A stretch of DNA of 63,919 nt, counting the filler, from Octopus bimaculoides (taxonomy: Eukaryota), in NCBI RefSeq assembly GCF_001194135.2. It is 6 parts of 5 records of this genome, joined end to end, with 100 filler letters (N's around TTAATTAATTAA, not from the genome) between each part and the next. Parts side by side here need not be neighbours in the genome. Positions count along the whole stretch, not along the records: positions 30,389 to 47,736 come from NC_068986.1; 5 more parts are not named here. One strand, given 5' to 3'. The position numbers and the translations under genes are program-made. Positions 37,908-39,221 of this stretch are shown piece by piece (positions within the stretch are counted from its first letter, which is position 1; every line of letters starts with the position of its first letter). Under the pieces are notes generated by a model, which searched no databases, was not told the DNA's origin, and worked only from the letters and a program-made list of their open reading frames with translations.

Positions 37908-37969
37908 TTAAGGACAACTATTAACGTTGTCTGTTGTTTGCTGTCTGCTGTGAATTAATGTAACTTGAC
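37908..37969 (-). CDS. Predicted terminal exon C: (C)QVTLIHSRQQTTDNVNSCP*
   Basis: Acceptor cttgcctctcttcag; the junction with exon B creates TGT (Cys); TAA stop. Confidence 0.5.
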
Positions 37970-38092
37970 CTGAAGAGAGGCAAGACCCCATATTCTTATC
38001 TCAGACAAGAGTGAGTCGGGATAATGCATTGAAATGTGCATAGGTTATTAAACAAGTTTTACTATGGATTGCGTTATGGCTCTTATTTAAAT

Positions 38093-38145
<53 letters not shown>

Positions 38146-38440
38146 TCATATTACACCGTTAATCCCAATACATTTTCTCTCCTCATCATAATTCAATCCA
38201 CTTACATCCATAATTAATTCCCTATGTGCTATGAATATTACAAAGCAAGATCAATATATTTTCATTCATAAAATTAGAACACGCTACAGGAACGAACCTA
38301 AAAACTGGTAGCATAAGTCACATTATTCATTAAATATGTAAGTATTTACGCATAAGAACATATAGATAACGCGTCTGATATGAAAAATGTGAAGAAAGTA
38401 TATATATATATATATATATTAATTACTGATTTTTACTTAC

Positions 38441-38566
38441 AGCTTCTTATCGTTTTCATGTCATCGTTGAGACATGATATTTCGTTACATTCCTCCATCG
38501 ATGGATGTATAAGCGTATGTTCTCCGGTACAAAAGCATTTTGCTTGATAGAAACAATCGCTACATT
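38441..38566 (-). CDS. Predicted internal exon B (phase 1-1): (E)CSDCFYQAKCFCTGEHTLIHPSMEECNEISCLNDDMKTIRS
   Basis: Acceptor tatttcctttacag, donor gct|gtaagt, 126 nt open, 6 Cys. Confidence 0.78.
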
Positions 38567-39154
38567 CTGTAAAGGAAATACATTTCTGAAGGCTAAAAAA
38601 CATAGGTTATTTTCCTTTTTGAAGAGGTGGATTAGTATAAATTCTACTTGAATTAAATTCCTTCAAATATATTTCAACGTTAGATCTCAGTAAGTGTCGT
38701 ATTCGTGTGAATGACGAAAGCGCGCATGAGCAGAGGCCAGCAGAGGCCAGCAGAGCAGCCAATACTGACTCCTTGTATTTTCCTATCAACTTCGCTTAGT
38801 ATTTTCATTCATTTCTTTAAACATTAAAAACGTGGTAAATATTAAAACGTGGTAATCACACAAAAGAACAAAGAAGTTCTTTTTTTTTCTTTTGTTAATT
38901 ACAGTTCTTAATTTTATTTTAGAAATTTACGTAGTGGGGATTGATAAGTTATCAACTATTCCTTGAAATGTTTGATGATATAAGACGTTTACCGACCTGC
39001 AACTAAGACAGGTGAAAATTTTCATGGATATAAGGAAAACGTGTTTTATATGTTGCGTGGAAAGAAATGGAACTTTTAAGGGGGTTATATCAGGACCGTA
39101 TACATCCATCGTGTTCGGCGCAATAGATGAAAACGTAAGAATATTGAAACTTAC

Positions 39155-39221
39155 CAAGTGGACCAAGCGTAAGACATTTTGGAAGGATAAGGAGGAACAA
39201 AGTTACCACCAATGTATACAT
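39155..39221 (-). CDS. Predicted first coding exon A, signal peptide MYTLVVTLFLLILPKCLTLGPL
   Basis: Acceptor ttatgcttctttactaacag (with CTAAC branch-like motif), ATG at exon start, hydrophobic core, donor ttg|gtaagt, ends in phase 1. Confidence 0.72.

Follow-up and report, generated by a model that had tools for sequence, protein, structure and literature searches.

Proteins of the Ly6/uPAR group are small, cysteine-rich beta proteins, secreted or displayed at the cell surface, with 8-10 cysteines, a mature chain that starts with C-x2-C within an LxCxxC motif, a C-terminal CC-x(3-5)-CN motif and an intron in phase 1 that follows the signal peptide. A C-terminal GPI-anchor signal is typical of many of them, although it is not universal. 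Fibronectin type I (FnI) modules are encoded by symmetric phase 1-1 exons, fold into one antiparallel sheet of two strands and another of three, and space their cysteines at about C-x24-C-x-C-x7-C, and the VWC/chordin-like CR domain (PF00093) has C-x2-C-x-C together with CC-x2-C. Nearest to the gene described here stand two proteins, both of them computational gene models: Octopus vulgaris CAI9723911.1 (P0001), a 'hypothetical predicted protein' of 126 aa, and O. bimaculoides XP_052824409.1 (P0002), entered in RefSeq as 'uncharacterized protein LOC128248058 [Octopus bimaculoides]'.

The window, that is, the whole stretch of 63,919 nucleotides of O. bimaculoides DNA that was analysed, includes a piece (30389-47736) of eukaryotic DNA that is rich in AT, contains microsatellites and is broken by five assembly gaps. 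A preliminary description of this piece had placed on its minus strand a hidden gene of three exons, A, B and C, for a secreted peptide of 84 aa with eight cysteines, one of them encoded across a splice junction, and had compared the peptide loosely with Ly6/uPAR proteins and VWC modules. Our analysis shows that the locus is LOC128248058, very probably a gene of five exons, four of them coding, whose product would be a secreted, soluble protein, and it places that product in a family of Octopus proteins with a fixed scaffold of 12 cysteines.

Results

Structure of the gene

The gene maps to the window's minus strand, at about 107.17 Mb of O. bimaculoides chromosome CM046606.1, and the genomic region that contains the P0002 locus (L002; CM046606.1 107,158,760-107,185,784) holds the whole window piece, base for base identical. 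When the 84-aa peptide was the query in a word-indexed search of 5.8 billion proteins, the single match was P0001, with 67% identity over residues 1-64, a stretch that crosses the junction between exons A and B; after ...TMRS the two sequences diverge. In a tblastn comparison of P0001 with the window, its continuation was found at 36232-36092 (CKDTEGQCLGSKEFAFGTYNFRCVKLYC...) and at 34097-34032 (VCRVDKNFAEGDYAVYENRFEC), and both the P0001 and the P0002 models join exon B to coding exon 3 and then to coding exon 4, which closes with TAA (Table 1). The resulting coding sequence of 390 nt has canonical AG/GT sites, and its 129-aa product is 100% identical to P0002 over the full query length. All three of its introns are in phase 1, as had been claimed for the two introns of the first model, and the codon split between coding exons 2 and 3 is TTT (one T before the intron and two after it), which encodes Phe65 and not the cysteine that had been assigned to that junction.

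Table 1. Features of the LOC128248058 locus and of the sequence around it (window coordinates)
Feature	Position	Strand	Remarks
TATAAA box	41114-41119	minus	within the block ~95% identical to O. vulgaris; putative promoter element
5' exon, 3' part (upstream ATG to GTAAGT donor)	40952-41053	minus	start of RefSeq P0002; probably 5'UTR or uORF
Coding exon 1 (exon A)	39155-39221	minus	ATG and putative signal peptide MYTLVVTLFLLILPKCLTLGPL; ends in phase 1
Coding exon 2 (exon B)	38441-38566	minus	residues 23-64, six cysteines; phase 1-1
Exon C	37908-37969	minus	sequence of intron 2; exon status unsupported
Coding exon 3	36091-36219	minus	residues 65-107 (FCKDTEGQC...LLYDQ), four cysteines; phase 1-1; from tblastn with P0001 and identity to P0002
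Coding exon 4	34029-34096	minus	residues 108-129 (VCRVDKNFAEGDYAVYENRFEC), two cysteines, TAA stop; from tblastn with P0001 and the spliced model
AATAAA polyadenylation signal	33976-33981	minus	48 nt past the stop; shared with O. vulgaris and the tandem paralogue
Assembly gap	36245-36769		within intron 2
~380-nt interspersed repeat, four copies	34732-35110, 36777-37158, 37622-37791, 39784-40163	both	83-96% alike
Intronic microsatellites (TATG/TACG)n, (GTA)n, (TA)n	34390-34620, 35850-35960, 38084-38150, 38400-38425
Non-LTR retrotransposon remnants	41676-42191, 44018-45657	minus	degenerate; interrupted by assembly gaps

A good part of the preliminary description stands. Exons A, B and C are found at the minus-strand positions that it had given, each of them is preceded by AG, GTAAGT follows A and B, and on a reading of the sequence the three do splice in frame to the 84-aa peptide. 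The existence of a spliced minus-strand gene with exons A and B is borne out by P0001 and P0002, both of which span the A/B junction. The gene is not hidden, since NCBI already lists it as LOC128248058 and its O. vulgaris counterpart is annotated too. That the ORF track misses it holds only in part, as exon B lies inside a 56-aa ORF and coding exon 3 inside a 68-aa ORF.

What fails is the third exon. A model in which exon C closes a three-exon gene, or one alternative isoform of the gene, and in which the product is the 84-aa peptide with eight cysteines, would draw on a good acceptor context (CTCTCTTCAG), a compatible phase and a reading frame that stays open for 20 codons. However, when the 4.9 kb that follow exon B were scanned, by crude criteria, for phase-compatible YAG acceptors with a pyrimidine content of 70% or more in front of them and a terminal ORF of 15 codons or more, four were found; exon C is one of these, and the other three are decoys of equal plausibility. 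The models from both species skip it; RefSeq lists no isoforms at the locus, P0002 being its sole protein there. Neither sensitive blastn nor tblastn with the peptide finds anything in the O. vulgaris locus that corresponds to the stretch with exon C (38084-37622), and orthologous conservation, which had been proposed as a check on the first model, is thus found for exons A and B and is missing for exon C. There is no AATAAA or ATTAAA within 190 nt of the exon C stop (193 nt separate it from the next poly(A) hexamer downstream), and six cysteines that are invariant in the family sit on the true exons 3 and 4. Because neither the models, nor O. vulgaris, nor a poly(A) signal supports exon C, and because decoys of the same kind occur, it is best explained as a chance acceptor followed by a short open frame within intron 2, and we regard a transcript that ends there as extremely improbable. 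With exon C wrong, the length of 84 aa, the eight-cysteine pattern, the junction cysteine and the family hints built on them fall as well, and the corrected gene has four coding exons, 129 aa and 12 cysteines in the mature protein.

The O. vulgaris gene is very similar to this corrected version. P0001 has 70% amino acid identity to the window protein, all 12 of its 12 cysteines and the same four coding exons with the same intron phases, and its locus (L001) is collinear with the window in flanks and introns, at 81-87% identity. The differences are a 3-codon deletion in P0001 and the size of intron 2, ~9.7 kb in O. vulgaris and 2.2 kb plus a gap in the window gene. The assembly gap lies inside intron 2 and stops 26 nt short of the acceptor of exon 3 (36219), so that the true intron may differ in length and content from the assembled one.

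Several kinds of repeats accompany the gene. Intron 2, intron 3 and the intron that separates the 5' exon from coding exon 1 hold the copies of a ~380-nt interspersed repeat (Table 1), and these copies carry spurious ORFs of 50-80 aa; scans of the piece for tRNA and Rfam families gave no match for this repeat. Among the intronic microsatellites, it is the (TA)n runs that give rise to numerous spurious hits when the window is compared with the O. vulgaris locus. The retrotransposon remnants are located upstream of the gene, and a GC-rich block with such remnants extends over ~43.9-47.4 kb of the window. A reverse-transcriptase domain is clearly recognisable in one remnant ORF (RVT_1, E 1.8e-13), and another ORF among the remnants, of 399 aa, has weak matches to RVT_1 and zf-RVT.

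The 5' end of the gene

The RefSeq model of LOC128248058 represents the same locus and the same four coding exons, but it differs in its start: P0002 begins at the upstream ATG (41053), 34 aa (MVRNANFG...DFK) ahead of MYTLVV, for a total of 163 aa, and its 5' exon ends in a GTAAGT donor that is spliced to 39221. The existence of this further 5' exon implies that the AG in front of the ATG at 39221 is a real acceptor. Between 40900 and 41200 the minus strand is ~95% identical to O. vulgaris, compared to 81-87% in coding sequence, introns and flanks. This block comprises the 5' exon and ~150 nt upstream of it, the TATAAA included, so that the most conserved part of the locus would, to judge from the alignment, be regulatory or untranslated. 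The upstream ATG is out of frame in O. vulgaris, owing to a 7-nt indel in a run of A, and opens a uORF of 37 codons there, and because the 34-aa extension is not conserved in frame in that species, the 129-aa form that starts at 39221 is more likely. The models of the paralogues have unrelated N-terminal extensions, yet all of them align at an M-Y/F-I/T start, and the ATG at 39221 has A at position -3 in the spliced mRNA. The start codon chosen in the preliminary description is thus backed by the family alignment and by the out-of-frame upstream ATG of O. vulgaris. The 5' exon, from 41053 to 40952, is probably 5'UTR or a uORF rather than coding sequence, and its ATG would be either the start of a conserved uORF or an annotation artefact; the length of the A run could also reflect an assembly error. 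The RefSeq start codon is therefore probably 34 codons too far upstream, where it masks the signal peptide.

Features of the protein

The precursor of 129 aa has a strongly hydrophobic core near its N-terminus (residues 4-13, LVVTLFLLIL, with a Kyte-Doolittle mean of up to 3.4), the remainder being hydrophilic. This hydropathy profile and the 12 cysteines support an N-terminal signal-like segment followed by a cysteine-rich body, as originally proposed. The putative signal peptide has no basic n-region, and since its most obvious cleavage site, between TLG and P, has Pro at +1, the point of cleavage is uncertain. The mature part, counted from about residue 21, consists of 109 aa (12.5 kDa) with 12 cysteines and an acidic pI of ~4.6, a value that argues against a classical cationic antimicrobial peptide. 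A scan of its sequence and hydropathy found no N-x-S/T sequon, no transmembrane segment and no GPI-type or hydrophobic C-terminal tail; the chain terminates at the last cysteine (…NRFEC).

A family of Octopus proteins with 12 cysteines

An exhaustive HMMER search of 1.84 billion representative proteins with a two-species profile (cut-off E<=1e-3) gave 13 matches, with E-values from 1e-75 to 1e-4, all of them from O. bimaculoides, O. vulgaris or O. sinensis. Every relative found in this search is thus an Octopus protein, in agreement with the lineage restriction that had been suggested. O. bimaculoides has at least 12 loci of this family: the window gene and LOC128248166, LOC106872966, LOC128248081, LOC106869796, LOC128248169, LOC106869804, LOC106872050, LOC128248170, LOC128248178, LOC128248177 and LOC106869794. 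Every one that could be placed or traced is on the same chromosome, six of them by position (90.74, 103.76, 106.63, 106.72, 106.77 and 107.16 Mb). In a 15-sequence family alignment (A3) the 12 cysteines are invariant or nearly so, and the common pattern, to which the window protein conforms, is a signal peptide followed by C-x2-C-x5-C-x-C-x13-C-x4-C-x11-C-x6-C-x14-C-x4-C-x15-C-x19-C, with the conserved motifs CKDxxGxC and CVxx(Y/F)C. The gene structure of the family consists of four coding exons separated by three phase-1 introns, the exons encoding, in order, the signal peptide, six cysteines, four cysteines and two cysteines. This structure is complete in the window gene and in O. vulgaris, and its boundaries were partly recovered by tblastn in the paralogues P0004, P0005, P0008, P0015 and P0018. 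No description of the family turned up in the literature searched, whether by topic or by the 12 LOC identifiers; a preprint on cephalopod venom deals with another, unrelated family that is specific to squids and cuttlefish.

Beyond the window piece, ~8.5 kb upstream of the gene, there is a further paralogue, of which L002 includes the intact last exon (1440-1507) with its acceptor, its open frame CRVDHNFAEDDYEVYKGRVEC, its TAA stop, an AATAAA and a 3'UTR, the remainder falling outside L002; no protein that matches it was found in the protein collection searched. In the region of the last exon, identity to O. vulgaris is 89.9% for this paralogue and 85.1% for the window copy. A comparison of 316 nt counted 25 changes unique to the window copy, 18 unique to O. 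vulgaris and 10 unique to the upstream paralogue. Because the upstream paralogue is nearer to O. vulgaris at the last exon, P0001 may be a co-orthologue of the tandem pair.

Comparison with known folds

Pfam-A hmmscan at E<=10 gave nothing relevant for the 84-aa peptide, the 129-aa protein, the O. vulgaris protein or the 13 family members, and searches of PDB sequences with the family profile, P0004 and the mature protein gave nothing meaningful, with two flavivirus prM chains at E ~0.5. AlphaFold2 produced an all-beta model of moderate confidence from the 15-sequence alignment (pLDDT 69.7, pTM 0.51) and a model with pLDDT 37 from an alignment of two sequences. When the former was compared with the PDB by Foldseek, an approach that the preliminary description had recommended, no match was obtained at E<=0.001. 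The best matches of this moderate-confidence model were pairs of FnI modules, with E 0.03-0.5 and TM-scores of 0.47-0.59 normalised by the target (E 0.03 for 3gxe_B; TM 0.59, normalised by target, for 3cal_C; ~90 columns).

The resemblance to Ly6/uPAR and VWC modules that had been noted for the 84-aa peptide does not extend to the corrected protein in these comparisons. A divergent three-finger protein of the Ly6/uPAR group, either a secreted modulator like a prototoxin or a GPI-anchored protein, would account for the start of the mature protein (xC-x2-C), for the phase-1 intron that follows the signal peptide and for the name that UniRef has given automatically to the paralogue P0004, 'UPAR/Ly6 domain-containing protein', a name that our searches did not reproduce. 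However, none of the 13 members matches the Pfam families UPAR_LY6, Toxin_TOLIP, QVR or Activin_recp at E<=10, there is no match among PDB sequences, and no three-finger or LU chain appears in the Foldseek top 50 of the model, itself of moderate quality. The number of cysteines and their spacing also differ: the octopus protein has 12 cysteines, no adjacent CC pair, no CC-x4-CN ending or terminal CN and no C-terminal hydrophobic GPI signal. Membership in the Ly6/uPAR group is, on this evidence, very improbable. The VWC/chordin-like CR domain was considered and rejected, since there is no Pfam match and the octopus protein has C-x2-C-x5-C-x-C and lacks the CC pair.

The Foldseek list and the exon structure point in another direction. 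The protein could consist of two small beta-sheet modules with disulfide bonds, related to FnI or to VWC subdomain 1 and encoded by one phase 1-1 exon each, and could serve as an adaptor that binds matrix or a ligand. Pairs of FnI modules head the list of structural matches, weak as these are, the model is all-beta as they are, the protein would be stabilised by disulfides like them, and the modules would coincide with coding exons 2 and 3, each of which is symmetric (phase 1-1) and 42-43 codons long. The fold match, however, is not significant and comes from a mediocre model, there is no Pfam match to fn1 (PF00039) or VWC and no other sequence match, and the octopus spacings, C-x6-C-x14-C-x4-C and C-x2-C-x5-C-x-C-x13-C-x4-C, differ from that of FnI. 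Nor is there a trace of internal duplication when the two halves of the protein are aligned with each other by hhalign. We consider such a relationship unlikely, and prefer to describe the product as a probably secreted protein with a 12-cysteine scaffold.

Selection at the locus

Compared to P0001, the coding sequence shows dS of 0.28, dN of 0.20 and dN/dS of 0.72 (0.67 in the mature part), and at the nucleotide level its identity to O. vulgaris (81.5%) is not above that of the introns (81-87%). Taken together, these values indicate that average constraint outside the cysteines is weak. They would also fit a duplicate of the tandem family that is in decay or has lost its function, as a young pseudogene whose frame is still open, and so would the fact that the window copy is the longest of the three branches around the last exon. 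The preliminary description had named dN/dS near 1, with stops in related species, as a sign against the gene; the value against O. vulgaris is the one given above, and the reading frame is intact and free of stops. Splice sites, poly(A) signal and 12 cysteines are likewise intact, and the promoter region and 5' exon are ~95% conserved. In a neutral simulation at 18.5% divergence, the frame stayed open in 3.4% of cases and all 12 cysteines were retained in 0.14%, the chance of both being ~1e-4. Reading frame and cysteine scaffold thus appear clearly to be under selection, while the rest of the protein drifts or adapts, which is typical of lineage-specific secreted proteins. A selected frame and scaffold together with a conserved promoter argue against a pseudogene, which we regard as distinctly improbable.

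Discussion

Our comparisons assign to LOC128248058 a product whose mode of action can be outlined in general terms. The protein would enter the secretory pathway by means of its N-terminal signal, would adopt a beta-rich fold, as predicted by the AlphaFold2 model, that may be locked by six disulfides, and would most likely be released as a soluble extracellular protein. Outside the cell it would bind a target, which could be a receptor, a component of the matrix, or a molecule that comes from prey, from a microbe or from another octopus. The variable surface of the protein would diverge fast on the fixed cysteine scaffold, and by analogy this is the usual pattern of lineage-specific secreted ligands and effectors that take part in chemical signalling, defence or saliva.

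A broader interpretation, which we put forward tentatively, is that these genes represent an undescribed family confined to Octopus, with a 12-cysteine fold that has no detectable relative, an expansion on one chromosome and fast evolution, and that they possibly serve a secreted function specific to cephalopods, such as chemical signalling between conspecifics, the chemistry of sucker and skin, or saliva and venom. In this scenario, the window gene and its upstream twin would be the result of a recent tandem duplication.

As the locus was already in RefSeq, little is gained in terms of gene discovery. The correction of the earlier model is useful with respect to the last exon, the length of the protein and its number of cysteines, and a protein that had been listed as 'uncharacterised' is now placed among at least 12 paralogues, found only in Octopus, that share a fixed 12-cysteine scaffold and have no relative in Pfam or the PDB. 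Secreted families that are restricted to a lineage in this way are candidates for cephalopod novelties, in chemical communication, venom or adhesion.
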